A stretch of 64,000 nt of DNA, from assembly GCA_965240325.2 (NCBI GenBank), contig OZ251255.1:558856-622855 (forward strand), written 5' to 3'. The notes beneath the pieces are model-generated. The model saw only the letters and a program-made list of their open reading frames with translations. It was not told where the DNA came from and searched no databases. Shown here piece by piece: positions 8,696 to 64,000 of the stretch. This stretch comes from Rebecca billardiae RCC1528. Its lineage: Eukaryota; Protista; Haptophyta. The translations under genes were made by a program, and so were the position numbers. How positions within the stretch are numbered: position 1 is the first letter of the stretch; each line of letters opens with the position of its first letter.

Positions 8696-9973
8696 ATGCA
8701 GCCGACACAAACCACATCGGCAACACGCGCTCGTTGCGTCAGTGGCGGCAGCGGGCTGCCCGACGCCTACCTCGATTCGTTTCGCGACCCGCTCCTCTGC
8801 GAGATTGCGGCGGTCGCGCGCGCGCTCAGGGACGACCGGCTGCCCGGCGTGCGGCACGACCGGCGGCTGCTCGGGCACGTGCGCGCCTGGCTCAGGGGCA
8901 AGCCAGCGGCGTTTGCGCGGCACGGGCCGCGCACGGTGACGTACCTCCGCGCCAACGTCTACGCCGAGGCGTCGGAGCTCGCGTGGTGCGCCGAGACCGT
9001 CGAGAACGTGTGCATCAACCTGCACACCGACACGCTCGCCGACCGCCGCAACCTCACGTTCGAGGGCTCGCACCTGCGGCCGAACCGCATCAGCTACGTC
9101 ACGGCCGTCGTCGAGCTCGACGACCGGACGAACGCGCTCACCGTCCGCGACGCTGGGCCGATGTACGCCGAGGACTCGCGCACGCGCCTCGACGCGCGCC
9201 TCGAGCAGCGCGCCGAGGTGCTCCTCGCGCACGCCAAGCTGTTCCGGCTGGCTCGGCGCGCGCCCGACGCCGAGCTGGCGGGCGCGAGGCGGGCGCTGTG
9301 GTGCGAGGTGCAGGAGCACCTGGCTGCGAGGCAGGTCGCCGAGGGCGAGCGCACGCTCAGCGCCGTGCACGTCGACACGGGCGTCGAGCGCGAGTACTTC
9401 CGCGGCTGGCCCGGCGCGCGCGAGTTTGACGATTCGGACCGGCTGCGCCGGACGGGGCTCGCGCGCGCGGACGTCGTGCGAGGCGTCGTGCAGCGCGCGT
9501 GGCTCGACCGCGAGCGCAACGACCCGCACCTGGTCACGCTGCTCACCAAGAACGTGCTGACCGGCGTCTACGTCGGCGACGACTTTGACAGCCGCGCGCC
9601 CCGCGTGTGCGCGCGCGGCTCGGCCATGCACGTGGGCGGCGTGCCACTCGAGGACGCAACCAACGCGCACGAGCAGAGCAACCACTGGCTCGCGGAGCGC
9701 CTCCCCGTGCTGGCGTACGTGCAGCCCGCGATCGCGCTTCCGCCCGTCGTGATCGAGCACACCCTCGCCGATGCACGCTTCTGCCCCGCGTGCGAGCAGC
9801 TCGGCGCCGAGCTGCGGCAGGGCAGCAGCGCATGCGCCGCCATGCGCGCGTACGAGCGCGGACACGGGCTGCCCGCCGGCCGGCTCTGCGCGCACGTGTC
9901 GTCCATCACCGTCAGCGCAAGTCCGCGCGGGGTGGTCATCATGGTTGTGTTTGGGATCGCCTTCTGCTGGTAA
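8696..9973 (+). CDS. Intronless orphan protein (~425 aa), copy 1
   Basis: Long ORF with GC3-rich coding-like codon usage and non-low-complexity protein; near-identical inverted copy at 32766-34019. Start codon uncertain. Confidence 0.65.
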   Translation: MQPTQTTSATRARCVSGGSGLPDAYLDSFRDPLLCEIAAVARALRDDRLPGVRHDRRLLGHVRAWLRGKPAAFARHGPRTVTYLRANVYAEASELAWCAETVENVCINLHTDTLADRRNLTFEGSHLRPNRISYVTAVVELDDRTNALTVRDAGPMYAEDSRTRLDARLEQRAEVLLAHAKLFRLARRAPDAELAGARRALWCEVQEHLAARQVAEGERTLSAVHVDTGVEREYFRGWPGAREFDDSDRLRRTGLARADVVRGVVQRAWLDRERNDPHLVTLLTKNVLTGVYVGDDFDSRAPRVCARGSAMHVGGVPLEDATNAHEQSNHWLAERLPVLAYVQPAIALPPVVIEHTLADARFCPACEQLGAELRQGSSACAAMRAYERGHGLPAGRLCAHVSSITVSASPRGVVIMVVFGIAFCW

Positions 9974-10631
9974 GAACGCGCAGTTAGAGTCGCGGGCGCG
10001 CGAGTGGGCACCGCGGGCACGGCGCATCACCTCTGCCTTACTGTAACTGGGCCTCAGCCCGGCCCTCAGCAAAGTCAAACTAGTATCAAAGAGTTAAGAG
10101 GCGTACTTGAAGACGAGCATATATATATATCATATATATCTGAGCAGCGCAGATGATCGAGTCGTGACGATCGACGTACGTCATATATATATATATATAT
10201 ATATCGCGTATAGTCGTCGTCAGAGCTAGGCGGCTCAGGCGGTCAGCAGTCCGTCGCGAGCAGAGGCGACTACGACGACGACGCGATCGGACGACGACAC
10301 TACTAAGTAGACTACTACTAGCTACAATCGTCAGAGTCGTCAGCACGCATCAGACGGCGCGCACCGTCACAGCGTGCTGCATGCCGTGCGGGCGTGCGTG
10401 CGGCTGCTCAGCGGATCGCGATCGTCCGGCGCGCCTCACGGCGCGCTCGAGCTATTCAACCGCATCCGCCCAGCGGCCGGGCTGGTGCGAAGGCGCCGAG
10501 CGCACGACGCGACTGGCCTCGGCGGCAGCGCCCGCGGGCGGTGGTGGCTGCGTGGCAGGCCCCATCGCGCGCGCGCCCCCGTCCAGGCCGGGCGGTGGGC
10601 CGTGCGCGGGGCTGGCTCGGAGGGCCGCCTG

Positions 10632-13462: not shown

Positions 13463-15155
13463 GCGGCGGCGGCGCGGCGCCCGACGCGCCGCCCCGGCGG
13501 CGCGCGCTGCCCCGCGCCGGCGCGCCGGCAGCTGCGGGCCCCTCCGCCGAGGCGTCGCGCCGCTCCGCGCCGCTGCCCTCCGCCGAGCCTGCCGCGTCCG
13601 CGCGCGCGGCCGGCGGCGCGCGCGCGGACGGCGGTGGGACGGCCGCGTCGACGCACGCAAATTGACCGCCGCGCGCGCCGGCGTCGGCGGCGTCGGCGGC
13701 GGCCGCCGCGCCGCGCGCGCCCGCGGCCACGCCCGCCGCGCCGGCGTACGCGAGCGCGCCCGCGCCACCCAGCCCGCGGCCGCTCGGGCCGCCGCCGCCG
13801 CGGCCGCCGCCGCGCACCACAGCAGTCGGCCCGCGGCCGCGGCCGCGCATGCGCGGCGCGCCGGCGGAGGTTGAGCCCGCGGCCTCGGGCGCGGCGGGCA
13901 AGTAGGTGACGGAGGGCACCGCCGCGCCGGGGACGAGCCCGCACCCGCCGCCGCCGTGGCTGCCAGCCGGCTGCGGCGGCCGCTGCTGCCCGTGCGGCCC
14001 TGCAGCGTGCGCCAAAAGTCCGGTGCCGTCGGGCAAAAGTCCGGTGCCGTCGGGCAAAAGTCCGGTGCCGTACGGCGGCTGCGCGCCGTACCCGCCGGCG
14101 GGCGCGGGGTAGTACGCGTCCGCGCACGGCGCGGGCGCGTAGTACGCGGGCGCGCGCGAGCCCGACGGCCCGAGCTGCGCCTGCGGCTGCGGCTGCTGCG
14201 GCGCGGCCGCAGGCACCGCTGAGGCGACTGCCACCAGCGTGCCACCCGCGCCGCCGCGCGAGCGGCCGCCACCCGCCGCCACGCCGCGGCCGCCGCGCGC
14301 GCGGCCGCCGCGGGTCACGACGCTGGCGGTGCCGAGGCTCTGCTGCGCGCCGCTCACCAGCGGCTGCGCCAGCGGCTGCGCCGGCTGCGGCTGCGGCTGC
14401 GGCTGCGCGCCACGCCGCGCCGCGGAGCGGCCGCGCGCCGCGCCGCCGCGCGCGTGTGACGGCTGCTCGCGCTCGACCAGCTCGCGCTCGAGCTGGTCGA
14501 AGCCGTCGTGCGCCCACTTGGGCAGCACGTCGCACTCGGCCAGCTTGGCGGCGGCGGCGGCGGCGGTGCCGCCGCGCCCGCGCGCGCCGCCGCGCCCGCG
14601 CACCGCCGCGCGCTGCCCGCGCAGCGGCCCGCCGCGCCCGCGGCCGTTGGCGCCGGCGACCTGGCGGTCGTCGTGCAGGAAGAAGGCGCCGTCGGAGGGC
14701 ACGATGGCCCGCCGGTCGATGTCGTCCTGCTTCGACTTGCCGCCGCCGCCGCCTGGCTGCGTGTCGCCGGCGCCGGCTGGGGCGATCGCGTCGTCGGCGT
14801 TGGCGAGGTCGTCGGCCGCGCCGTCGCGCTCCTCCTCCTCGCCTTCGTCCTCCTCCTCCTCCTCATCCTCCTCCTCCTCCTCCTCCTCCTCCTCCTCCGC
14901 CTCCGCCTCGGCGTCCTCGTCCGCGGCCGCGTCCTCCACCACAGCCTCATCCTCCTCCTCCTCCTCCTCCTCCTCCTCCTCCTCCTCCTCGCCGTCCTCG
15001 TCGTCGTCGTCGTCGTCGGCATCGCGCTGGGCCACCACCTCGCGCTCGGGCTTGGCCTCGTCCTCCTCGCCCTCCTCCTCCGCGCGCGCCTCGTCACGCT
15101 TGCGTGGCGCTGGCGCCCGCAGGCGTGCCGCGGGTCGGCGCGCGGGGGCGACCAT
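10632..15155 (-). CDS. Btz-domain (CASC3/Barentsz/MLN51-like) exon-junction-complex protein with long low-complexity C-terminus
   Basis: 1507-aa ORF; acidic N-terminus followed by the Btz/SELOR motifs IVPSDGAFFLHDDR ... KWAHDGFDQLE. Confidence 0.8.
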
Positions 15156-21524: not shown

Positions 21525-21692
<168 letters not shown>

Positions 21693-21693
21693 G

Positions 21694-23660
21694 TAAACTT
21701 TTCTGAGGATAGCGCACCAGCAAAATCCCTTGACCGCCATCCGGATTTTACGGAGGCCGCGTTTGGACGCAGAAACGCGCGATGGCGAGGCCCGCCCTCG
21801 CACCACCGCTCTCGCGAGATCGCGACCGTGCGACCTGCGGCGTTGCGCTCGACGCGCTCTTTCTGCTCGGAGGCCGCGAGGACTCCCAGGTGCGCCAGCT
21901 CGCGAGCGCGCACCTTCCTCCTCGCCGCGCTCGCCGAGCACGAGCCGATCTGCAGCAGATGTGCAAGGAGCCGCATGTGGCCTTCCTCGCGCGCGCGGCA
22001 CGGCTGCACACGAAAATCGTTAGAGGGCACTTCTCCGCGCATTCTACATTTTGGGGAAAGAACGCCTGAACTGCACAAAAAGTGCCCTCTAACGCTTCCG
22101 CTCCTCGCCGTTGCGTGCACGCGCAAAGGAGCACTGCAAAGGGTGCGACTGGGAGCATTCCTTCTCCCGGGCGGCCACCACGGCCTCGGAGGTGGTGAGG
22201 AACGCGTCGGCGACCACGGCGTGGACCACCTCCGTCGCGCCGGACACTCCGGTCGCCCCTCGCCGGACTCCATCCTCGCTGCGCGCTGACCGTTTGCCGA
22301 GCGGGCTGCCCCGCCGCCTGCCCGGCGTGTGCCCGCGTGGTGACACAAGATGGTCGAAGGCGTGGCAGCGCGGTGGTGCGTGCGATCGGGGGACCCCACC
22401 TGAGCTACGACACGGGCGCGCGCGCTCATCCGTGCTCATCACGGTGGTGCACGCGCGCGTCGCGCGCTGACGCTCGTCGGCTGTCGCGCGCTGACGGCTG
22501 GGCTGCTTTGGGGTGTCGGCGGCGGCCACAGCTCGCTGGTACGGGCGCGATGGTGGCTGCGAGTGGTACGCGGCGTTGCACCAGGTCCGTGTGCGTCACG
22601 CACGACGCTCGGCCGGCTCGCCCTCGGACCATTGGCTGAGCCCTACTCGCCGCGCGCACTGCGCGCGGCAGCCGCTCCGCAGCTGCTCCGGGCACGAAGC
22701 GCGCCCCGCGCGCTGCACGTGGGCGCGACGAGGTGGTGCAGCGAGCATGCGCGAGAGTGTGCGCGTGATGGGCACCACAATGACGATACTTGCCATGCAC
22801 ATCTGCCTCTCGCCACGCCTTCGTCACGATAGCTGCGACTGCTGCCCGGAGGTGCGCTCGAGCGCTCGCGCGCGTTTGAATCTGGGCTCGGCGGCGATCG
22901 CGTGGACGAGGGGCAGCGCGGTGCACGGTGGCGGAGCGCGTGCGGAGCGCAGCCTACACCTCCTACACGCTCCATCCAGACACATCGCGCATGCTCGCGC
23001 GGCCTCCTCGGTCCATCACGTGCGCGTGCGCGCGCGAGCAGGTGTGCATTCGCCGGGCGCGTTCACGGCGCGCCGCGTTGGCGCGCGCGCACCGATACCC
23101 GTGCGCAGCTCGACGAGCGAGCGCGGTGTGTTTCGATGCGTATGGGGAGGCTCGAATTTACGCGCGCGCACGCGCCGGCCCTCGCCGCCCCTTCGCTCGC
23201 CCACGCCTCATCTGCGCGCTCGGCGTTTGCAGGCAGCTGCGCATTCTTTCCGACACGTGCGCAAACGAGCAGATGGCGCTGGGCGAGGTCGATTGGTGCG
23301 TCAGATATTCGGCAACGACCAGGCCCGCTTGTGTGCCGCCGCTCGTGCTACTCTCGACGACCACCTCTGGCTCGGTCGCGCGCACGAGGCTGCTCGCGGC
23401 CGAATCGTGCCGTGTACCGTCAAGCTGTACCGTGCGCAGCGAGGCGCACTCAGACGTCGGCATGGGCTCGCATGCGAGGGCCCGGCAGTGCGACGCGTCG
23501 ATGGAGCATGCTCCGGATACGCTTCGGCGCACTTCCCGACGCGCACGAGCCGCTCGAAGGCGCGGAAGGGCGCCCAAACGGGGCAACCGCCATTTTGCGC
23601 CACTTCGGCCCGGATGGCGGTCAAGGGAAATTGCTGGTGCGCTATCCTCAGAAAAGTTTA
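21694..23660. mobile_element. Non-autonomous TIR DNA transposon (~1.97 kb) with 51-bp TIRs, between microsatellites
   Basis: TAAACTTTTCTGAGGATAGCGCACCAGCAAAATCCCTTGACCGCCATCCGG (21694-21744) matches the reverse complement of 23610-23660 with 2 mismatches. The terminal TA may be the TSD. Confidence 0.85.
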
Positions 23661-23663
23661 ATC

Positions 23664-23666
<3 letters not shown>

Positions 23667-23694
<28 letters not shown>

Positions 23695-25957: not shown

Positions 25958-26803
25958 GACCAGTTGCACGCGTGAGCGCCGAAAAAACGACACTTTGGCA
26001 GTGATAGTCACCGTCGCCGCCTCGGGCATGCCGCTGCCGCCGGCAGCAGCGGCAGCGGGAGCGTGGCAGTGGATCTACCACCTTCTGCGTTACACGCTGC
26101 GTCGTGCGCGCCAGGTGGCAGGTGTCCCCTGTCTGCCGCGCGGAAGGCAGCGGTCGGCGAGCGCAGAGGTGAGAAGGAAGGCGCGCACGCATCGTGAGAG
26201 CTTCAGCAGCTTGCCCACGCGCTTCACGTAGGCGGTGTTGTTGCGTGCGCACGCCTTCTGTACCCGCACACGCGATCGCAGCGTGAGCCACTCCAGCCTG
26301 CCTGCGCATCGCGGGCCGAGCCGCCGGCGCCTCGTCTCCTGAATCCTCATTCACGAGGACAGCACGTGTATGTATCCGTGGCGCGCTCGCTGCCGATGGC
26401 GGCTCCCCGTGTCGAGGGCGTTTGGCTGGAGCCGCATCCAGGGCATATATCGTCACGGTCCCACCCGATGCTGACGCTGAGGTGGCGCGCTTGCCGAAGG
26501 CAGCAGCATTGGCTGATGCCTTCTGCATTGGCCACCTCTGCGCGACCGCGCGTTCACGCTGCCGGCGCGCGGGCGGCGTCGCTTGGTGGGCACCTGCCTT
26601 GGGTTTTGTCGTTCGTTCTCAGCGACGGTTGGGTCGATTGACATGCCGATTGGATTGGGGCATTGCGAATCGGCTTCGCAATGCCCCATTCCGCTCGGAT
26701 CGGCGCGGGCGTCAGCCATGCGGCAGCGCGAGTGACAAAACCGACATTTCATACGCATGTCGTTTTTTCATACGCTCACGGTTACTCACCCGTGCAACGG
26801 GTC
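25958..26803. mobile_element. GAC...GTC MITE, copy 1 (846 bp), 4-bp TSD AAAT
   Basis: AAAT|GACCAGTTGCACGCGTG ... CACCCGTGCAACGGGTC|AAAT. Homologous along its length to 38842-39806 in inverted orientation. Confidence 0.85.
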
Positions 26804-32357: not shown

Positions 32358-32765
32358 TCGGCCGAGTGACGAGTAGGTATAGTAAAGACGCGATCGCGTC
32401 AGTTAGCCCTCAGATCGACTCCCGGACCGCATGATGGCAACTGACTGTGTGACTCAGACGCGGTCCGCCGGGGCCGGACGGCCAGCCGCATTACAAAATA
32501 ATTTAGCATTGATGATGCTGCTGCAAGCCCGCGGTATAGTCGCTTCATCAGACTCCGAGTGAGACAGAGTAGTCTCACTCACTGCCTTCAGAGACGGTAG
32601 TATACCCGGGTAACTATCCGAAACTACGTACGTAGTACGCTTACGGCTGGCACGCCTCTTTGCTACGGTGGCCCACGGTGCGGTGAGTACGCCGTGCCCG
32701 CGGGCAGAGTGCCCGCGCACTCGCGGCGCCCCGCGACTATACTCTATAGTACTGCGCGTTCGATC

Positions 32766-34019
32766 TTACCAGCAGAAGGCGATCCCAAACACAACCATGA
32801 TGACCACCCCGCGCGGACTTGCGCTGACGGTGATGGACGACACGTGCGCGCAGAGCCGGCCGGCGGGCAGCCCGTGTCCGCGCTCGTACGCGCGCATGGC
32901 GGCGCATGCGCTGCTGCCCTGCCGCAGCTCGGCGCCGAGCTGCTCGCACGCGGGGCAGAAGCGTGCATCGGCGAGGGTGTGCTCGATCACGACGGGCGGA
33001 AGCGCGATCGCGGGCTGCACGTACGCCAGCACGGGGAGGCGCTCCGCGAGCCAGTGGTTGCTCTGCTCGTGCGCGTTGGTTGCGTCCTCGAGTGGCACGC
33101 CGCCCACGTGCACGGCCGAGCCGCGCGCGCACACGCGGGGCGCGCGGCTGTCAAAGTCGTCGCCGACGTAGACGCCGGTCAGCACGTTCTTGGTGAGCAG
33201 CGTGACCAGGTGCGGGTCGTTGCGCTCGCGGTCGAGCCGCGCGCGCTGCACGACACCTCGCACGACGTCCGCGCGCGCGAGCCCCGTCCGGCGCAGCCGG
33301 TCCGAATCGTCAAACTCGCGCGCGCCGGGCCAGCCGCGGAAGTACTCGCGCTCGACGCCCGTGTCGACGTGCACGGCGCTGAGCGTGCGCTCGCCCTCGG
33401 CGACCTGCCTCGCAGCCAGGTGCTCCTGCACCTCGCACCACAGCGCCCGCCTCGCGCCCGCCAGCTCGGCGTCGGGCGCGCGCCGAGCCAGCCGGAACAG
33501 CTTGGCGTGCGCGAGGAGCACCTCGGCGCGCTGCTCGAGGCGCGCGTCGAGGCGCGTGCGCGAGTCCTCGGCGTACATCGGCCCGGCGTCGCGAACGGTG
33601 AGCGCGTTCGTCCGGTCGTCGAGCTCGACGACGGCCGTGACGTAGCTGATGCGGTTCGGCCGCAGATGCGAGCCCTCGAACGTGAGGTTGCGGCGGTCGG
33701 CGAGCGTGTCGGTGTGCAGGTTGATGCACACGTTCTCGACGGTCTCGGCGCACCACGCGAGCTCCGACGCCTCGGCGTAGACGTTGGCGCGGAGGTACGT
33801 CACCGTGCGCGGCCCGTGCCGCGCAAACGCCGCTGGCTTGCCCCTGAGCCAGGCGCGCACGTGCCCGAGCAGCCGCCGGTCGTGCCGCACGCCGGGCAGC
33901 CGGTCGTCCCTGAGCGCGCGCGCGACCGCCGCCATCTCGCAGAGGAGCGGGTCGCGGAAGGCCTCAAAGTAGGCGGCCGGCGGTTCCACTGCGCGTGGGG
34001 GCTTCGATGGCCGCGTCAT
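32766..34019 (-). CDS. Intronless orphan protein (~417 aa), copy 2
   Basis: ATG at 34019 (MTRPSKPP...). Near-identical to 8696-9973 from FRDPLLCE to the stop codon. Confidence 0.7.
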   Translation of the reverse strand: MTRPSKPPRAVEPPAAYFEAFRDPLLCEMAAVARALRDDRLPGVRHDRRLLGHVRAWLRGKPAAFARHGPRTVTYLRANVYAEASELAWCAETVENVCINLHTDTLADRRNLTFEGSHLRPNRISYVTAVVELDDRTNALTVRDAGPMYAEDSRTRLDARLEQRAEVLLAHAKLFRLARRAPDAELAGARRALWCEVQEHLAARQVAEGERTLSAVHVDTGVEREYFRGWPGAREFDDSDRLRRTGLARADVVRGVVQRARLDRERNDPHLVTLLTKNVLTGVYVGDDFDSRAPRVCARGSAVHVGGVPLEDATNAHEQSNHWLAERLPVLAYVQPAIALPPVVIEHTLADARFCPACEQLGAELRQGSSACAAMRAYERGHGLPAGRLCAHVSSITVSASPRGVVIMVVFGIAFCW

Positions 34020-34182
34020 GGCCGCGTGGGTGTGTGTGTCTGTCCGCCAATGGAAAGGCCTCGAGCGCGTGTGGCGCGGCGGGGCTTGGCGGGGAAGTTG
34101 CTCGGTGTGGTTGTTGATGAGTATTTCATTATACTTCCCATCGAACTCACAGAACCACAGAAGCAATCTCAGAAGCATATAC

Positions 34183-34214
<32 letters not shown>

Positions 34215-34554
34215 TAAGGACGTGGTATGCAACATATATATGTATATATACACACATATATATATACTTATGATGAGTGATAAGCTCATTCATTTACGAC
34301 CGGAAGGCCACGGCCCTTCGGAAGGCTTCGGTTTTTTGGTGTGGAACATTCACAATGAGTATTTGATACTGAGACATATTCAAGTCCAAAGCCGCTCGTG
34401 GTTGCAAATGGTTGCAAATGGTCGTAAATCTGTGCTCTCTACAGGTCGGGATTCACCACCAACGCCGACTCGTGTCGACGACTGGGCACTGCCGCCGAAG
34501 AATCAGGAGACCCGCGGGCGTCGTCCTACCTGTGTCGTTAAATGCCCTTGGTTA

Positions 34555-36098
34555 AGGTGGCACGGCAGGAAATCGCCCGGACCGGCGGGACGCGACGTAA
34601 CAGCCATGGCTGCCGCGTGCGCGCGCCGAGTCGAGGCTCGTGCACGCCGACCGCGTACGGCACGGTCCGGAGCGCATGACGGGTGGTCGAAGCACGTGCG
34701 CCGGCCTCCTGCCCCGCCCTCTGATGAGCTCGTCGCGTCTCTCCTCACGCTCCAGCCGTGGACCAGCGTGCACACGTGCGGGTCGGCTGGCGAGCTGCAG
34801 ACGCGGTGGATGTGCTGCATGGTATGTGCGCCACTGGCCGCCCAGATGGTCAGGGCGTACGGGGGCGGACGTGCGCACGTGCGTCCAGTCGTTTGAACCG
34901 TGCGCCGAGGCCGTTTTGGAGGTGTGCACCTACTCGCGGATGTCGGCGGCACTCCATGGGCAGCCCGTGGGGCCAGAGAAGCCGCGACGGGCAGCATTCG
35001 GGCGAGGTGCGCATGGCCCCATGGCGGCAGGGAACGCCCTGTGCGTGCGCTACGGTCTACGCCGAGGTCAGCAATATGGACTTGGCCTGTGTATGTGGCT
35101 TGAACAGTCTGCTTGGGGCCCTACGGAAGTCACCGCGCGTGCGCAGCGTCCCCGGTGCCCTATAGTAGGCTATACGCGGCATGCCAAAACTCGAAATCTT
35201 TTATAGAACTTCTACTGGGACCCTAGCTACTCCCGAGCCGTACTCATAAACTGTGCTTAGCCAGCTCGGCATGCGAATCGGATTTCAAAAAACGAAATTA
35301 ACACGGAAATGGTCCTATTTTGGCTATTTTGAACCACTTTCATGTTATTATATTTTCGTTTTTTGAAATCCGATTCGCATGCCGAGCTGGCTAAGCACAG
35401 TTTATGAGTACGGCTCGGGAGTAGCTAGGGTCCCAGTAGAAGTTCTATAAAATATTTCGAGTTTTGGCATGCCGCGTATAGCCTACTATAGGGCACCGGG
35501 CGGACGCTGCGCACGCGCGGTGACTTCCGTAGGGCCCCAAGCAGACTGTTCAAGCCACATACACAGGCCAAGTCCATATTGCTGACCTCGGCGTAGACCG
35601 TAGCGCACGCACAGGGCGTTCCCTGCCGCCATGGGGCCATGCGCACCTCGCCCGAATGCTGCTCGTCGCGGCTTCTCTGGCCCCACGGGCTGCCCATGGA
35701 GTGCCGCCGACATCCGCGAGTAGGTGCACACCTCCAAAACGGCCTCGGCGCACGGTTCAAACGACTGGACGCACGTGCGCACGTCCGCCCCCGTACGCCC
35801 TGACCATCTGGGCGGCCAGTGGCGCACATACCATGCAGCGCATCCACCGCGTCTGCAGCTCGCCAGCCGACCCGCACGTGTGCACGCTGGTCCACGGCTG
35901 GAGCGTGAGGAGAGACGCGACGAGCTCATCAGAGGGCGGGGCAGGAGGCCGGCGCACGTGCTTCGACCACCCGTCATGCGCTCCGGACCGTGCCGTACGC
36001 GGTCGGCGTGCACGAGCCTCGACTCGGCGCGCGCACGCGGCAGCTATGGCTGTTACGTCGCGTCCCGCCGGTCCGGGCGATTTCCTGCCGTGCCACCT
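34555..36098. mobile_element. Foldback element: ~745-bp inverted arms with ~56-bp AT-rich spacer, TA-flanked
   Basis: TA|AGGTGGCACGGCAGGAAATCG...GATTTCAAAAAACGAAA (to 35297) mirrored by 35354-36098 ...CGATTTCCTGCCGTGCCACCT|TA. The ORF track shows mirrored ORFs with only a few differences. Confidence 0.9.
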
Positions 36099-36155
36099 TA
36101 GAATGGGTCAACTGGACACCGGGGCTAACTGGACAGTCGGAGCGGCGGACAGGAG

Positions 36156-38841: not shown

Positions 38842-39806
38842 GACCCGTTGCACGGGTGATTAACCGTGAGCGTACGCCTGCCTGAGCTGTGTGCGTCTCT
38901 TATTCTTAGTAAACTGTACAGTTTACTAAGAATAAGAGACGCACACAGCTCAGGCAGGCGAGATTGACGCCCGCCTATGAAAAAACGACAAGCGTATGAA
39001 ATCTCGAGGTTTTGTCGCTCGCGCTGCCGCATGGCTGACGTCCGCGCGGATCCGAGCGCAATGGTGCATTGCGAAGCCGATTCGCAATGCACCAATCCAA
39101 TCCGCATGTCAATCGACCCAACCGTCGCTGAGAACGAACGACAAAACCCAGGGCAGGTGTCCACCACGAGGCCACGCCGCGCGCGCGCTGGCAGCGTGAG
39201 CCGGCGCGGTTGCAAAGGGTTGCCCAAAGGCAGAGAGATCAGCCAATGCGGCTACCTTCGGCAAGCACGCCACCTCAGCGTCAGCATCGGTGGGGCCGTA
39301 TGACGATATATGCCCTTGGATGCGGCTCCAGCCAAACGGCTCTCGACGCGGGAAGCCGCCATCGGCAGCGAGCGCGTACACGGATACACGTGCTGTCCTC
39401 GTGAACGAGGATTCAGGAGACGAGGCGCGGCCCGCGATGCGCAGGCAAGACCTAGGGAGTGGCTCACGCTTTGATCGCGTGTACGGGTACAGAAGGCGTG
39501 CGCACGCAACCACACCGCCTTCGTGAAGCGCGTGGGCAAGCTGCTGAAGCGGCTCACGATGCGCGCTTACTTCTCACCTCCGTGCGCTCGCCGACCGCTC
39601 ACGCTGCCTTCCGCGCGGCGGACCTGGGAAACCTGCCACCTGGCGCGCACGTCGCAGCGCGTAACGCGGAAAGTGGTAGATCTGCTGCCACGCTCCCGCT
39701 GCCGCCGGCGGCGGCGGCAGCGGCATGCCCACGATGCGGCGACGGTGATGACTATTGTATCACTGCCAAAGTGTCGTTTTTTCGGCGCTCACGCGTGCAA
39801 CGGGTC
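38842..39806. mobile_element. GAC...GTC MITE, copy 2, 4-bp TSD CTTC, nested in the hAT-like element
   Basis: CTTC|GACCCGTTGCACGGGTG ... CACGCGTGCAACGGGTC|CTTC. Confidence 0.85.
38875..38975. mobile_element. 101-bp insertion containing an 86-bp perfect palindrome, TA-duplicated
   Basis: Absent from MITE copy 1 (GAGCGTA|TGAAAAAA). 38875-38960 is its own reverse complement; TA flanks both sides. Confidence 0.8.
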
Positions 39807-46700: not shown

Positions 46701-47790
46701 TGGCGCGGGCGGCGGCGGCGGCGGCGGGCTCGGCGCCCGCGCCGCCGGCCCGGGCGCACACCGCCACCGCGGCGCGCGCGCCCGCCGCGAGGGGCGCGTC
46801 CGCGCACGGCGGCAGCGCGCCGAGCGCCGCGCCGGCGCGCGCGCACGCCAGCCGCGGCGCCGCCGGGCCGCGGCCGCGCTCGGCGGCGCCGCCGCCGCCG
46901 TCCGCGCGGGCGAGCGCGTGCGCCGCGGCGTCCGCCGCGGCCGCGTCGGCCTCGGCGGCGCGCGCCTCCACGTGCTGCGCCGCGCCCGCGGGCCCGCCGC
47001 CCCCGCCACCCTCCAGCGCCGCCAACACCGCCGCGAGCAGCTGCACCGCCTGCGGCCGCGCGGCGCGCGCGCCCGGCGCCATCGCCTCCGCGCCGAGTGC
47101 CGTGCAGCGCACGAGGTCGAGGGCGGGCGGGAGGAGGGCGGCGGGCCCGCGGGCGCGCGCGGCGGGCGCGCCGCCCGCCGCGCCGCCGCCGCCCGCGCGC
47201 AGCGCGCCGCCCTCCGCGGGCAGCAGCAGCAGCGCGGGCGCGAGCGCGAGCGCCGCGCGCGCCGCGTCGCAGCGCACGGCGAGCGACGAGTGAGAGAGTG
47301 CGGCGCAGAGGCGCAGCAGCACGAGCGGGGCGAGCGGGCGGAGGCCGCGCGCGCCCAGCGCCGCGCCGACGTGCGCGAGCAGCCGCGCCAGCGCGCCGCG
47401 CACGCCCGCGTCGCCGTCCGCGAGGCAGGCGAGCGCGCCGCCGACGATGCGCGCTGGCGCGGCCGCGAGCGCGGCCGGGTGGCGCTCGGCGAGGTCGCGC
47501 AGGCCGTGGAGCGCCTCGCGCCGCGCGACGGGCGCGTGGTGGTTCAGCTGCGCGAGCAGCTCGCCCACCGTCAGCGCGCGCCCCGACGTCGGCGCGCCGC
47601 CGCGCTCGGCCGCGTCCGCGCGCGCGAGCGCGCCCTGCTCAGCCACGACGAGCGTGCGCGCGCGGAAGGCGGTGGCGGTGGCGTTGGACGGGGCGGGGGC
47701 CTTCTTGCCGACGCGCTGCTTCTGCGCCTTGAAGTCCGACGCGCCGCCGCCCTTGGGCGCCGCGCCCTTGCGCTTCTTCGCGCCGCCCAT
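43798..47790 (-). CDS. TEX10: Pre-rRNA-processing protein IPI1/TEX10-like (Rix1 complex)
   Basis: N-terminus MGGAKKRK...DFKAQKQRVGKKAPAPSNATATAFRARTLVVAEQ...LTVGELLAQLNHHAPVARREALHGLRDL is typical of Ipi1/TEX10; long Ala-rich helical remainder. Confidence 0.85.
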   Translation of the reverse strand: MGGAKKRKGAAPKGGGASDFKAQKQRVGKKAPAPSNATATAFRARTLVVAEQGALARADAAERGGAPTSGRALTVGELLAQLNHHAPVARREALHGLRDLAERHPAALAAAPARIVGGALACLADGDAGVRGALARLLAHVGAALGARGLRPLAPLVLLRLCAALSHSSLAVRCDAARAALALAPALLLLPAEGGALRAGGGGAAGGAPAARARGPAALLPPALDLVRCTALGAEAMAPGARAARPQAVQLLAAVLAALEGGGGGGPAGAAQHVEARAAEADAAAADAAAHALARADGGGGAAERGRGPAAPRLACARAGAALGALPPCADAPLAAGARAAVAVCARAGGAGAEPAAAAAARATPPGRAPGASSARPQPQPQPPQQPQQQLTCAAVLLLLAQCWRAMADAEAHEAEGAAAGGGGAAAAAGAAGRAPGGASAASPRAHTGGGGGGGAAAGAPSSAPPPPLPLPLLLRCVLSVTAALRQQRQRARRGGGGAAEGGSHAARALALAAALPAGDAADAERAERALRALVLGALTAGADAGGGGRAAGGAAGAGGAAEREALWELGAALLSAGGGAAEAPARRPPAARQPQQRARERAAARAAAAADGGGGGAAALRAALSAALIAELGAHPRGGAGAALPAAAVHAATRLLPRGGAAAPSARADAALRRALFECAARHAACEPAPGAPPGESGGAAVRAACARGGAGVCALVCACAALTLPPALLPPHAHGAAPPPPPRAHARAAGDGGAADADATDADAAAADAAAADAAAERWRAALPRAAWESGMAAAAGGDDCARAGAQCALQLRTLRAAVLHSAAAAAAAPSARGAGGAEAARSAAAACAAHARALAPLFSARPRGAAAGGGGAVVFGPWASGGLPAAARAEALAVVCALPRPLPAALCTALARCCAHASVMGGAASAAGCAALAAAAAPPPGAPPAAAAGAWPPCVAALLSAAVSPTAFGSGADARRAQPPPPPPPERVRAADAPARWRAGGAAAPTAPAAQLGADGAEELGALVALAIDDGCARRALCAQACAALRAAALGAGLGAARAAVARALGAGGGAAAPGCCVLRAHADDEPPAGRGAAPEAWEAWAAPPEPAADADAADADAAACAEWSALCASLCAAEAQLAACAALAPAAPGGADGGAPGGADGGAAALDPIEGIALRCALQLLLGMPAHSRARAVRAGGAGGGWGWVGACAPVARALCAAPALARPLLAGLAAALDAGGARRPGAEGVDDGAHGAGAAAHAACCLLRCAELARLWASPALAPSWRALLRAAERARAAPATPRVAADACAALCADVSAALLLRGGAQLS

Positions 47791-48067: not shown

Positions 48068-48874
48068 ATGAGGTACACGGCGCGCGCGTGGGCGCGCGCG
48101 GGCGGGCGGGAGGCGCTCGTGCTCGGGCTCGCCGCCGCGTGCTCGCTGCCGCTCGGGCCCGCTCGTGCCTGACGCGCGGCTCGCGCGCGCGCCCGTGCTC
48201 TGGCGCGCGCTCCGCCGCGCGCGCGCAGTAAGATCCAGACGGAGTACCTGAAGGAGTGCGTGCAGGCGGTGTTCGACGGGTGCAACGAGCGGAAGCGCAA
48301 GTTCACCGAGACGATCGAGCTGCAGATCGGCCTCAAGAACTACGACCCACAAAAGGACAAGCGGTTCGCGGGGCAGGTGAAGCTCAACCATGTCGCGCGG
48401 CCCACGATGAAGATCTGCGTGCTGGGCGACGCGTACCACTGCGAGCGCGCGGAGACGGAGGGCGTGGACTTCAAGACGGCGGACGGCCTCAAGGCCTTCA
48501 ACAAGAACAAGAAGCTCATCAAGAAGTTCGCCAAGCAGTACCACGCGTTCCTCGCGTCCGAGTCGATGATCAAGCAGATCCCTCGGCTGCTCGGGCCCGG
48601 GCTGAACAAGGCGGGCAAGTTCCCCACGCTGATCACGCAGCAGGAGGCGCTGTCGAACAAGATGGACGAGCTGAAGAGCACCGTCAAGTTCCAGCTCAAG
48701 AAGGTGCTCTGCATGTCCGTCGCCGTCGGCCACGTCAACATGGACATTGGCGAGGCGATCGACAACCTCAAGCTCGCCATCAACTTTTTGGTCTCGCTGC
48801 TCAAGAAGAACTGGCAGAACGTCAAGTCGCTGCACATCAAGTCGACGATGGGCAAGCCGCAACGCATCTACTGA
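48068..48874 (+). CDS. RPL10A: 60S ribosomal protein uL1 (L10a), 2 exons
   Basis: ATG AG|gt intron 48073-48228 ag|T AAG gives MSKIQTEYL..., then [24 protein letters not shown]...[25 protein letters not shown]. Confidence 0.98.
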
Positions 48875-59964: not shown

Positions 59965-60070
59965 ATGAGACGGACAGCGTCCGGACTCCGGTCAGCGGAA
60001 AACCCTGTGCGAGGTGCGCACCTCGCACAGGGTTTTCCGCTGACCGGAGTCCGGACGCTGTCCGTCTCAT
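59965..60070. repeat. 106-bp perfect spacer-less palindrome
   Basis: ATGAGACGGACAGCGTCCGGACTCCGGTCAGCGGAAAACCCTGTGCGAGGTGC is followed immediately by its exact reverse complement. Confidence 0.95.
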
Positions 60071-60939
60071 GTACAGTCCCCTCAACAATTGGTTACCCTT
60101 GATGTGTTTAGCTGTCTATACCAGCTCAGTCACTGTTTGAGGCCCACTGCTGCATGCTATCTGCTACTGCACCTATAGCCCTCACAGACCAGGTGGGTAT
60201 GAGCTGGGCGGGTGTGTGGGCTGAGTCAGTATCAGATAAATTGAATGCAGGTGCACAACCGGCTGACGGGTGCTGCGCGGGGGTGCTGGACCACCACGAG
60301 GGCAGGCAGGGATGGAAATTCACCCCCTGAGCAGGCTGTGGGCTGGCTGGCTGGGAGTGTAGCAGCTGTATAGTGGGCCCTGGCGCTGCAGCTGGATGGC
60401 CTTATTTGATACTGCCTAGCAGCCAGCCTAGCAGCACAGCCTGGCGTGAGCAGTGCGGTTTCAGTGCGCAGGCCACGTCTCTGCGGGTGGTGCGGTCGGG
60501 GAATGGCCACCACAGTGCACCATAAGATGCACCTAGCCTGCCAGCGGCCCACCTGCTGATTGGGTATGCCCTGTAGCACAGCACACGAGGCTCCGCCGAA
60601 AATCAGCGGCGCGCTGTGCTACAAGCTGGGCTGAAAGGGGTGTGGGAGCCAGTCGAGAGCCTGTCGGCCGGGTATGGACCCGAGTTTCTGCTACCCATAT
60701 TACCTTCATAGGGGAAATGTTTTCTATAGGGATTTTTGGCCCTGTCGGCCGTAGCGATGGTAACACCCCGGTCACCCGCCCGCGCAGGCACGCGAGGGAC
60801 TGCGGCTCGACAGCGCGCGCGTCAGGCGCGCGCGCGCGGCGGCGGCCGCGCGGCGGCGCGCCGCATCGCCGCCGTGACGCCGTCGGCGTCCTGAGTCAGC
60901 GGCGCGGTCGGTCCGCGGCGGCACTCCTGGGCCGGCGGG

Positions 60940-61713
60940 CCCGGGCCTCGCGGCCCGGGAGGAGGCCCCCTGTAACAGCTGTAACACCGTAACACGTAAC
61001 AAGTCCGGCTCGTCCGAGTCCGGGGCTGCCGGCGGGCCGGCCGCGCCGGGCCCGGGAGGAGGCCCCCTGTAACAGCTGTAACACCGTAACACGTAACAAG
61101 TCCGGCGCGTCCGGGTCCGGGGCTGCCGGCGGGCCCGGGCCTCGCGGCCCGGGAGGAGGCCCCCTGTAACAGCTGTAACACCGTAACACGTAACAAGTCC
61201 GGCTCGTCCCGGAGTCCGGGGCTGCCGGCGGGCCGGCCGCGCCGGCGGCCCGGGACGGGAGGCCCCCTGTAACAGCTGTAACACCGTAACACGTAACAAG
61301 TCCGGCGCGTCATCCGGGTCCGGGGCTGCCGGCGGGCCCGGGCCTCGCGGCCCGGGAGGAGGCCCCCTGTAACAGTTGTAACACCGTAACACGTAACAAG
61401 TCCGGCTCGTCCGAGTCCGGGGCTGCCGGCGGGCCGGCCGCGCCGGGCCCGGGAGGAGGCCCCCTGTAACAGCTGTAACACCGTAACACGTAACAAGTCC
61501 GGCGCGGCGAGTCCGGGAGCCGGCCGGTCCGGGGCCGCGGCGGGCGGGCCGCCGGGCCCGGGAGGAGGCCCCCTGTAACAGCTGTAACACCGTAACACGT
61601 AACAAGTCCGGCGCGGCGAGTCCGGGAGCCGACCGGTCCAGGTCCGGGGCGGGCGGGCCGCCGGGCCCGGGAGGAGGCCCCCTGTAACAGCTGTAACACC
61701 GTAACACGTAACA
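60940..61713 (+). repeat. Tandem array of 8 units (97-109 bp) with a 41-bp core GGAGGCCCCCTGTAACAGCTGTAACACCGTAACACGTAACA
   Basis: Cores start at ~60961, 61058, 61155, 61258, 61358, 61455, 61564 and 61673; linkers are GC-rich and related to each other. Confidence 0.95.
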
Positions 61714-62054
61714 CAATGGCGCCGCTCGGCCATGGCCCGTCGTCGGCCCGGTGAAAAAATGGCGGCGGGGCGCGCGGCGCGCAGCGTCGCGCTCGGTGCG
61801 CTCGGCGGGGCTCGATGAGCGCCCGCGGACGGGCGAGCGCGCACGGGCGCGAGCACCGCGGCGGTTCGCGTGGCGTCGCGCTGCACCGACCCCGGCGCGA
61901 GCGCCGAGTCCTTGTTTGCACGCCGCCTCGTTTGCCGAGCCCGTCGGCCGACGGCGCGAGGTGGGCGCGGCGGCGGCGGCGGCGGCGGCGGGGCGGCGGC
62001 GGCGGCGACGGCGACGGCGCGCGGGCGCATGCGCGCTGCACGGCCGCCGCGTCG

Positions 62055-63302
62055 TCAACGCGCCGGGCCCATCGCGGCACGGCCGCTGGCGAACGCGGCG
62101 TGGAAGCGCGAGGCAAACTCGGCGCTGCGGGGCGGCGCGCCCGTGCGGCCGCCGCCCGCGCAGAAGAGCATGCTGCGCAGGCAGACGGCGCGCGCGTACC
62201 CGGCGCCGCGCGCTGGCACGCACGCCTCGTCGGCGCAGCACAGGTCGAGGCCGTCGGACTTGGCGAAGTAGAAGACGGTGGCGTGCTCGGCGCCCTTGCA
62301 CTCGCACCACCTGCTGGCGGTCGAGCACGTCGCGACCGGGCCGTGCGCCGTGCTCCCAGCAAACACCTGCACGATGCGCGGCCAGCGCTCGGCCGAGCCA
62401 GAGACTCGTGCGTGCGCGTGCAGCTGCTCGTTGAGCCAGCCGACCAGCGCCGCGCGCCGCGCGCCGGCCGCCGCATCGCGACCGGCGGCGCTCGTCGCCG
62501 GCACAGCCGGTCGGCCGGGCGCGGGCGGCGGCGCGCTCCACTCGACCAGCTCGGTGCGCAGCCGCGCGCGAGAGAGCCAGCGCGCGCCATCCGCCGCGAG
62601 CCGCCGCAGCGCGTGCTGCGCAGGCAGCGCGTCGAGCCACGCGCAGCGCACGGCGCCGTGCTCGTCGGCGGCGACGACGGCTGCCGGCAGGTAGGGCGGG
62701 CCGCCGTCCGACTTGGCCGTGAACGGCAGGCGCAGGCCCGCCCCGTAGATGCTGCAGTCGATCTCGAGCTTGTGCCAGCACGGCGGCCGCGGCTGCGAGC
62801 GCGCCCAGTCGTGCAGGACGCGCGCGATGCGCGCCGCCTCAGCGGCCGAGATGATGGCCGAGTCGTTCCATGTCGCGTGAATCCCGGCTCGGCGCACGCC
62901 CGGCGCCGAGCCGGCGGCGGTCGCGGGGCTGGGCGCGCGCGCCGAGACGTACACGACGCGCCCAGCCACGGGAACGGGCACGGGCAGATGCTCCTCCGCG
63001 ACGCGGTAGAGGCCGACGAGCAGTGCGGCCACGTCCGAGGGGGAGGGCGCGGTGCTGAAGGCGCAGTCCACATCGACGACGAAGCGCGCGCGCGCGCCGA
63101 GCGCCTCGACCACCATGGGCGCGCGCGCGCCGTGCACCAAGTGCTGCGCGGCCACGAGTGCATCGAGCTCGCGCAGGCGGCTGCTCGGCACGTGCAGCCG
63201 GCCGCCGAACGTACGCTGCGAGCCACTTGCCAGGAACACAACCTCGTGCGTGCACGCCTCGCCTGGGCGCGCGACGCTGCGCGACGCGCGCCCCGCCGCC
63301 AT
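62055..63302 (-). CDS. Archaeo-eukaryotic primase (NCLDV/herpes-PrimPol clade-like) with C-terminal UL52/PrimPol-type Zn finger, intronless, ~415 aa
   Basis: THEVV..GGRLHVP, VVE...RFVVDVD (motif I), AGIHATW (motif II), IDCSIYGAGLRLPFTAK...PYLP (motif III), Zn finger RWC-x6-H-x15-C-x4-C. Confidence 0.82.
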   Translation of the reverse strand: MAAGRASRSVARPGEACTHEVVFLASGSQRTFGGRLHVPSSRLRELDALVAAQHLVHGARAPMVVEALGARARFVVDVDCAFSTAPSPSDVAALLVGLYRVAEEHLPVPVPVAGRVVYVSARAPSPATAAGSAPGVRRAGIHATWNDSAIISAAEAARIARVLHDWARSQPRPPCWHKLEIDCSIYGAGLRLPFTAKSDGGPPYLPAAVVAADEHGAVRCAWLDALPAQHALRRLAADGARWLSRARLRTELVEWSAPPPAPGRPAVPATSAAGRDAAAGARRAALVGWLNEQLHAHARVSGSAERWPRIVQVFAGSTAHGPVATCSTASRWCECKGAEHATVFYFAKSDGLDLCCADEACVPARGAGYARAVCLRSMLFCAGGGRTGAPPRSAEFASRFHAAFASGRAAMGPAR

Positions 63303-63394
63303 TTTTTCACGCGGCCACGGACGAGCGGCCACTGCGCCATCGTCGCGAGACGCGGCGGCAGGTCGCTCGGGGAGGGGCGCGGGCGACGCGACTC

Positions 63395-63697
63395 GTGCTC
63401 GCGCCCGTGCGCGCTCGCCCGTCCGCAGTCGTTCCTCGAGCCCCGCCGAGCGCACCGAGCGCGACGCTGCGCGCCGCGCGCCCCGCCGCCATTTTTTCAC
63501 CGGGCCGACGGGCCGCGGCCGAGCGGCGCCATTGTGTTACGTGTTACGGTGTTACAGCTGTTACAGGGGGCCTCCTCCCGGGCCCGGCCCGGGCGGCCCG
63601 CCCGCCCCGGACCTGGACCGGTCGGCTCCCGGACTCGCCGCGCCGGACTTGTTACGTGTTACGGTGTTACAGCTGTTACAGGGGGCCTCCTCCCGGG
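63395..63697 (-). repeat. Right inverted repeat containing two inverted GTAAC core units
   Basis: TGTTACGTGTTACGGTGTTACAGCTGTTACAGGGGGCCTCC at 63535-63575 and 63650-63690. Confidence 0.95.
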
Positions 63698-64000
63698 GCC
63701 CAGCGAAACCCGCCCGGCCCCGGCCCCGGACCCGGACTGGCCGGCAACGGGCCGCGAGAATCCGAGACCGACGGTCTCAAGTGAAAGTGATGGCTGACAG
63801 TGTGCTCAGCCAGGGTTTAGTCAGGCGGCGTGGCTCGGTCAGACACCCGCAGTCCGGGTGAGTCCGGCGTGAGAGTGTTACATGTTACTGCTACGCTCGG
63901 CCCGTAACACTTTTCACGGGCGCGACGGGGGTGAGTAATAGTTAGAGGAATTGTTACCCGGGAGAAACTGGGGTCCTTGGTCCGGACTGGGCCACATCCG

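Follow-up and report, generated by a model that had tools for sequence, protein, structure and literature searches.

What kind of element is formed by a single primase gene lying between inverted arrays of short tandem repeats, and how did it come to lie in an algal chromosome? The question is raised by a 64,000-nt stretch of DNA from the haptophyte Rebecca billardiae RCC1528 (assembly GCA_965240325.2, contig OZ251255.1, positions 558,856–622,855 of the forward strand; hereafter the window, position 1 being its first nucleotide). Near its right end, a module of ~2.8 kb carries a primase open reading frame (ORF) of the giant-virus type between two inverted-repeat arms 1.5 kb apart, the outer parts of which are built from ~100-nt units that each contain a cluster of short direct repeats (iterons). 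The same unit design, with iterons peculiar to each lineage, recurs beside divergent relatives of the gene. We tentatively read the locus as a selfish module of viral origin, integrated and low in copy number, in which the iteron arrays would be cis-acting ends or origins for the module's own primase, a reading that we hold to be quite possible though short of probable. With more reserve, and as a rather unlikely extension, we consider that it may represent a family, not described before, of minimal selfish replicons or mobile elements of eukaryotes, in which one giant-virus-type primase is accompanied by inverted, lineage-specific iteron arrays that co-evolve with it, in GC-rich haptophyte-like algae.

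The primase gene and the motifs of its product, which carries the catalytic motifs of archaeo-eukaryotic primases (AEPs), are as follows.

62055–63302, minus strand: primase ORF, 415 codons open from the first ATG, intact
63063–63080, minus strand: motif I, VVDVDC, residues 75–80; AEP catalytic motif, DxD
62868–62888, minus strand: motif II, AGIHATW, residues 139–145; AEP catalytic motif, sxH
62721–62765, minus strand: motif III, EIDCSIYGAGLRLPF, residues 180–194; AEP catalytic motif, hDxxxY..GLR
62220–62309, minus strand: Cys/His cluster (C333/C335, H340, C355/C356, C361); predicted UL52-type C-H-C-C zinc finger after the AEP core

The openness of the ORF is weak evidence, because open frames are common in DNA this rich in G and C; judged by sequence, it is the conservation of the motifs across relatives, rather than openness, that counts for its status as a gene. 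The AEP motifs were present in every relative that covers their region, and C333, H340 and C356 were invariant in the family alignment (A2), with metal binding predicted. GC content at the first, second and third codon positions was 0.75, 0.63 and 0.92 (0.77 overall), a clear coding signature similar to that of the neighbouring host genes. A GTG-started extension of the frame reaches 63500. An earlier reading made from the letters alone (the sequence-only reading) had described an intronless ORF of ~415 amino acids with three AEP motifs and a C-H-C-C cluster, and this description held, the motifs being common to the relatives as well.

Comparison of the modelled structure with the PDB using Foldseek gave herpes simplex virus 1 (HSV-1) UL52 as the top match (9nqp_B, E = 9e-5), and the Prim/Pol domain of African swine fever virus (ASFV) PrimPol was also matched (8iqi, 8iqb, 8iqc and 9ivi; probability ~1.0, 207–271 aligned columns). 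The fold matches in BFVD were headed by viral proteins of 400–480 amino acids (M1I480, A0A2N9QVV2 and G8DGS5, E = 2e-10 to 4e-8), which, to guess from their accession series, may be chlorovirus or coccolithovirus proteins, and continued with alloherpesvirus primases and with 'C962R-like AEP' or D5-like proteins of many giant viruses, including Medusavirus, Feldmannia virus and Pandoravirus. On its motifs and predicted fold, the primase is a new and very divergent member of the giant-virus/herpesvirus AEP clade, not a cellular PrimPol or PriS. An assignment to the AEPs of nucleocytoplasmic large DNA viruses and herpesviruses over PrimPol and PriS, together with Foldseek as a way of checking it, had been proposed at the outset; the top folds (HSV-1 UL52, ASFV PrimPol and algal giant-virus primases) and the AEP_C962R matches of relatives agree with it.

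Relatives were sought with HMMER among 1.84 billion representative proteins at E ≤ 1e-3. Six were found, with 28–47% identity, and cellular PrimPol was absent from these matches. A word-indexed protein search returned one relative with the ORF and two with the profile, none of them new, and was probably hampered by low-complexity GC-rich words. The most informative relative, P0006 (399 amino acids), is encoded on a 14.4-kb metagenome contig (L002) in a giant-virus-like context, its neighbours being genes for a capping enzyme-methyltransferase, a NUDIX protein, TFIIS and a second capping enzyme. P0006 matched Pfam PF23162 (AEP_C962R) at 6.4e-11. This family was matched by two of the seven family members (P0006 and P0005), while PF03121 (Herpes_UL52) was touched by one (E = 0.096). 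The window ORF aligned with P0006 over the AEP core (30% identity, E = 5e-12), so its tie to Pfam AEP_C962R is, in terms of sequence, transitive through P0006. P0006 itself had no match among PDB sequences. Its gene is the last before the end of the contig, and three GACTCT repeats stand directly upstream of its start (L002, 9940–10000).

The five GC-rich relatives lie on short contigs of 1.2–2.6 kb with 67–73% GC. Intact copies are those of the window and of contig L001. The copy on L004/L057/L058 is truncated once, the N-terminal half with motifs I and II being absent, and its matched part shows no change of frame; that on L055/L059 begins at the contig edge and has its matched part in three reading frames (two frame changes); that on L056 also begins at the contig edge and is divided in two by a single frame change or gap; and in L003 the zinc-finger part is unrecognisable in the called frame. 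Similarity at the DNA level between the window and its relatives was limited to the coding region. Metagenome contigs searched with the primase ORF gave no relative, and neither did 2.9 million viral contigs searched with the ORF, P0006 and a family alignment (A5), a method that detects close kin only. A conserved cell gene is unlikely because the family has very few members, diverges fast and is in part decayed; the relatives of a host ribosomal protein, L10a, are 92–95% identical. The data sets in which the relatives occur are ERR14847149-51, SRR24310115, SRR24310122, SRR22250839, SRR28961174 and JGI 3300042925. Two observations concern the contigs themselves. Positions 1–24 of L057 appear to be the remnant of a sequencing adapter, so that its first bases would be non-biological. 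L003 and L055/L059 come from the consecutive runs ERR14847149-51 and may belong to one organism or study, in which case two lineages (with TGCAG and TAAAG iterons, respectively) would occur side by side.

The repeats around the gene are arranged as follows.

60931–61713, plus strand: left tandem array, 8 units of 97–109 nt
61557–61856, plus strand: left inverted-repeat arm, comprising the two innermost 109-nt units and a unique inner part of ~143 nt
61735–61792, plus strand: start-box copy of the left arm, pointing inward; GAAAAAATGG followed by ~11 primase-like codons, with a stop after 19 codons
61857–62054, no strand: spacer from the left arm to the stop of the ORF, with a (GGC)n microsatellite at 61964–62024
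63269–63326, minus strand: start-box copy at the real primase start codon (repeat pair)
63395–63697, minus strand: right inverted-repeat arm, comprising a unique inner part of ~116 nt and two iteron units of 109–115 nt
63453–63510, minus strand: start-box copy of the right arm, pointing inward
63535–63565 and 63650–63680, minus strand: right-arm cores, each the 31-nt core with four GTAAC
63698–63756, minus strand: degenerate partial unit, 71–76% identical to spacer parts of the left units
63877–63957, no strand: small pentamer cluster outside the right arm, with three GTTAC and one GTAAC in 80 nt

The two arms (61557–61856 and 63697–63395) were paired in three gapless blocks (103, 78 and 116 nt) at 97–98% identity, with two small indels. 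Their outer parts consist of ~100-nt tandem units in unequal number, eight on the left and two on the right. The core of a unit is 31 nt long and contains four GTAAC iterons spaced by 9, 8 and 7 nt. This four-GTAAC core occurred eight times on the plus strand (60971–61713, at intervals of 97–109 nt) and twice on the minus strand (63535–63680), and was absent from the rest of the window (chance expectation, 0.00 matches). In seven of the eight units of the left array the core is followed by AAGTCCGG and, further on, GAGTCCGGG. The array has a higher-order period of ~300 nt, and a degenerate unit may extend it leftward to ~60834. Units of the 97-nt and 109-nt types were 69–77% identical over their whole length, as against 97% between the arms. 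The start box (~58 nt) consists of G[AG]AAAAATGG and the first ~11 codons of the primase; its three copies are the only ones in the 64 kb.

Between the arms lie the primase ORF, the (GGC)n tract and ~200 nt of spacer only. Transposase, integrase, helicase, PolB, capsid and packaging ATPase genes were not recognised between the arms, and ORFs in alternative frames between or across the arms had no Pfam match. The sequence-only reading had noted ~300-bp inverted repeats with GTAAC-rich units of ~100 bp (eight left, two right), with no transposase, integrase, helicase, PolB or capsid gene between them; the former stood at 97–98% identity and the latter was borne out by a Pfam scan of all frames. 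The right boundary is soft because of the degenerate unit reaching ~63756 and the pentamer cluster at 63877–63957. GTTAC/GTAAC pentamers occur elsewhere in the window at about 0.5 per kb, and the cluster may be a decayed unit, with the element perhaps extending further to the right; its membership is uncertain. Sequence was visible to position 64000 only, the window ending ~300 nt past the right arm. A longer inverted repeat in the outer flanks, first matched by eye, was dropped, the flanks not being similar on test. A perfect loopless hairpin with 53-nt arms (59965–60070) lies ~860 bp left of the tandem array, after a histidine-kinase gene, and contains GTCCGGACTCCGG, which is reminiscent of the GTCCGG motifs of the repeat units.

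A unit of the same design is found near relatives of the gene. The common unit comprises a G/C-rich lead-in closed by CTG or CAG, four to five iterons at 7–9-nt spacing, A[AG]TCCGG, and GTCCGGG 6–10 nt later; the window and L004/L057 share a lead-in of the GAGGCC type. Contig L003 begins inside a 111-nt tandem repeat; its unit, with TGCAG iterons, lies on the coding strand ~450 nt before the gene. L004/L057 has a unit with GCACC iterons, also upstream. In L055/L059, TAAAG iterons preceded by CCGGACTT lie downstream of the gene in inverted orientation, exactly that of the left arm of the window, and the contig breaks off within the array. Around the gene in L004, L057 and L058 there were also start-box-like sequences and weak inverted repeats. 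A blind, automated composite scan recovered the unit at these loci and at no others of the relatives, thus at three of the five non-redundant loci; as background, window strands beyond the element gave 3 hits over 122 kb, and control strands gave 3 over 615 kb. The probability of such recurrence was about 0.01 as a rough estimate, with orientation left uncounted. A scan of metagenome and viral contigs by iteron spacing alone yielded 50 loci, all of low GC, unrelated, and none with a primase. In the loci compared, the linkage between primase and iteron unit recurs in three independent relatives with differing cores, which strengthens the association of primase with repeats that had been suspected from the window. 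Unit flanks that are kept, and iteron cores that are replaced, beside a diverging primase form the pattern expected of a protein–site pair that co-evolves, as far as sequences can indicate it.

How such a module might work can be outlined. It would be of giant-virus (Nucleocytoviricota-type) ancestry and integrated in the nuclear genome, with the iteron arrays serving as its cis-acting ends or origins. The primase would recognise its own iterons, probably through the zinc-finger or C-terminal half, and lay primers at the arrays, which host or helper-virus polymerases would extend, while the inward-facing start boxes of both arms would carry the start signals of the gene. Iteron binding, priming at the arrays, and any extrachromosomal replication or mobility are inferences from the features described above, as is the self-priming on its own terminal repeats that the sequence-only reading had suggested. 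ColE2 Rep, RSF1010 RepB' and pRN1 ORF904 are AEP-like primases, each encoded by a replicon on which it finds a particular site and begins synthesis. These origin-specific plasmid primases may offer the nearest likeness, by analogy in the proposed working only and with no sequence relation claimed; they belong to bacterial and archaeal plasmids and use a single site or hairpin, whereas the window has inverted tandem arrays.

Among known primases, the stand-alone AEP–zinc-finger proteins of algal giant viruses are alike in size (~400–480 amino acids), in having a Cys/His cluster behind the AEP core, and in lacking a helicase. They gave the best BFVD fold matches, but at 14–16% identity in the fold alignment, and unlike them the window gene is part of a cellular chromosome, shows the codon use of its host and stands between iteron arrays. 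ASFV C962R and D5-like primase-helicases, compared through fold and Pfam model, share the Prim/Pol fold and the DxD form of motif I; the window primase is without the D5N or superfamily 3 (SF3) helicase part and falls below the Pfam PF23162 model. Herpesvirus UL52 resembles it as the top PDB fold match, in DxD and in a C-H-C-C zinc finger after the AEP core, but is about 900–1000 amino acids long and works in a three-protein helicase-primase. Iyer and colleagues are said to have placed cellular PrimPol, in 2005, in the same broad clade, with an AEP and a UL52-like zinc finger. PrimPol has DxE in motif I, as against DVD in the window primase, and the window family is tiny and patchy.

Likenesses to mobile elements are partial in the same way. 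Transpovirons, polinton-like viruses and virophages share inverted terminal repeats, a link to giant viruses and integration in algal genomes, but measure 7–40 kb and carry several genes (capsid, ATPase, helicase), whereas the window module is one gene in 2.8 kb without hallmarks. Polintons/Mavericks and virophages encode PolB or a primase-helicase together with integrase, capsid and ATPase over 14–40 kb, none of which was found inside the arms or over the 60 kb on their left side, and transpoviron-like linear plasmids are free linear DNAs of ~7 kb with helicase genes that depend on a giant virus, whereas the window copy is integrated and has no helicase. Cut-and-paste transposons likewise have terminal inverted repeats (here arms of ~300 nt at 97%), but the transposase that they encode was not found in the window module. 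Endogenous giant-virus elements have a composition distinct from that of the host, in contrast to the host-like GC of 0.77 and GC3 (GC at third codon positions) of 0.92 in the window ORF. Foldback elements share long, unequal arms of tandem sub-repeats, but occur in many copies and carry no primase, coding for nothing or for a transposase, whereas the window module encodes a primase and is present there once. The sequence-only reading knew of no described element with this architecture; our literature search, in a limited library, likewise found no description of an isolated primase gene set between inverted arrays whose iterons differ by lineage.

The DNA around the module has the aspect of a eukaryotic chromosome arm, with 57–87% GC per 2 kb and ~73% overall. 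For Diacronema lutheri, a GC content of 73.25%, equal to that of the window, has been reported, with 45% of genes single-exon (PMC8379373). Window genes were read as open frames, spliced gene models being unnecessary. Frames with high GC3 gave matches to CASC3/Barentsz, histidine kinase, ankyrin repeats, a CUX1/CASP-like protein, L10a and an Asp/Asn hydroxylase, and the GC3 of host genes in the window was 0.80–0.95. The L10a frame (48173–48871) has MMETSP/JGI relatives at 95% and 92% identity, and its best named relatives are haptophytes (71–72%). These features suggest a pavlovophyte-like haptophyte as host. For 13 proteins of the window, exact look-ups gave no recorded entry. The 60 kb to the left of the primase module consist of ordinary host genes, with no viral hallmark genes among them. 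An Rfam search of the window gave no match. ARAGORN called a tRNA-Cys and an odd tRNA with a four-base anticodon (13918–14008 and 46804–46895), both within GC-rich coding-like DNA and probably false positives, and a DUF7739 match in the window scan, which was under its cut-off, was disregarded.

A small selfish module is favoured because the left 60 kb are host DNA, the arms enclose the primase alone, and the layout recurs in relatives. The closest rival would make the locus the remnant or left edge of a larger endogenous viral element (giant virus, polinton-like or transpoviron-like) with unit-built terminal inverted repeats, either after an internal deletion that left only the terminal primase gene between the terminal repeats, or with the rest lying to the right of 64000; we judge this possible, if on the whole unlikely. 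It would account for a primase of the algal giant-virus stand-alone type, for the position of the relative on the giant-virus-like contig L002 as the last gene before the contig end, and for the soft right boundary, with the window stopping 300 nt after the arm. Both unit-built terminal repeats, in a haptophyte polinton-like virus, and integrated polinton-like viruses, in Diacronema lutheri, are known among haptophytes (bioRxiv 10.1101/2022.07.28.501842), which again speaks for a remnant or edge. It is less easily reconciled with the lack of any viral hallmark gene in the left 60 kb or between the arms, with arms just 1.5 kb apart, with host-like codon use, or with a gene-plus-unit layout that is found also in relatives with ordinary or AT-rich sequence near by on their contigs; nor was any relative met in the 2.9 million viral contigs, where close kin alone are detectable. 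A fresh viral insertion is unlikely because the GC3 of the primase is host-like. That same value, together with the intact ORF, its single copy in the window among normal host genes, and the presence of the gene's own start region within the arms, could instead indicate a host gene long domesticated from a virus, the units and start boxes being regulatory DNA and the promoter region having been copied by a local inverted duplication. We consider domestication improbable: the relatives are very few, 28–47% identical and partly truncated or frame-broken, as against 92–95% for a conserved host protein; a regulatory array needs no inverted copy past the 3′ end of its gene, yet L055/L059 has one there; and the iteron cores differ wholly between lineages.

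Arms of this build resemble foldback elements, and also the sub-terminal repeats that some cut-and-paste transposons possess. The module might be a non-autonomous transposon with inverted repeats, of the foldback or another type, that has acquired a viral primase gene and relies for its movement on a transposase encoded elsewhere; the iterons would be binding sites for that transposase. The long arms of tandem sub-repeats, unequal at eight and two units, and the further inverted-repeat structures of the window would suit such an element, but if the gene had been captured by chance, one would not meet the same gene family again in several lineages with different iterons, and neither a target duplication nor a second copy was seen in the window, so that we give this account little credence. 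Inverted duplications can also arise in long-read assemblies, from a chimeric or fold-back read, and another near-perfect palindrome does lie at 34553–36100. An artefact of this kind is nonetheless extremely improbable for the module, given arms that are 97% rather than 100% alike with two indels, 1.5 kb of unique coding DNA between them, different unit numbers, and the occurrence of the design in relatives from independent data sets.

Several results weigh against the selfish-module reading that we favour. The GC3 of 0.92 is at host level and fits long residence or domestication as well as it fits a host-adapted element. Neither the primase ORF itself nor the family profile matched Pfam or PDB sequence profiles, and the AlphaFold model, built from a seven-sequence alignment, was of low confidence (mean pLDDT, the predicted local distance difference test, of 54). 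The module encodes no recombinase or other means of integration; no target-site duplication was detected, the outer flanks are dissimilar, and the ends are fuzzy from degenerate units. The window contains a single primase copy, and public data sets with a relative have only one or two copies each, unlike a proliferating transposon. No iteron unit was present in the short flanks of L001 and L056, the flanks of L058 are too short or unit-less, and an inverted unit was absent from the downstream 430 nt of L004.

Other repeats were recorded elsewhere in the window. Inverted copies of a 1221-nt segment (8758–9978 and 32761–33981; 99% identity, 22.8 kb apart) each lie inside a GC3-rich ORF (8696–9973, plus strand; 32766–34289, minus strand) with no Pfam match, and may be a repeated gene or transposon. 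The palindrome at 34553–36100 has arms of 599 and 150 nt at 99% identity with tiny spacers, and could be either a fold-back produced in assembly or an element of the foldback kind. A series of inverted repeats (26024–26742 and 39008–39730; 80–95% identity, 12–13 kb apart) may mark the ends of a larger element. Inverted repeats of 61 nt (21684–21744 and 23610–23670; 90%) abut long (TA)n and (TATG)n microsatellites and bracket ~1.9 kb.

Should the locus be merely the remnant of a larger virus, it would still mark past contact with giant viruses in a little-studied class of algae. If the selfish-module reading is true, a primase and its own recognition repeats would be enough to make up a unit of selfish DNA in the nucleus of a eukaryote, adding a new minimal design to the web of giant viruses, their small parasites and transposons. 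The family would then offer a natural protein–site pair, in four lineages with four iteron cores, for the choice of start site in the PrimPol/UL52 clade, and would be a eukaryotic counterpart of the 'initiator plus iterons' modules of plasmids, with a primase as the initiator.

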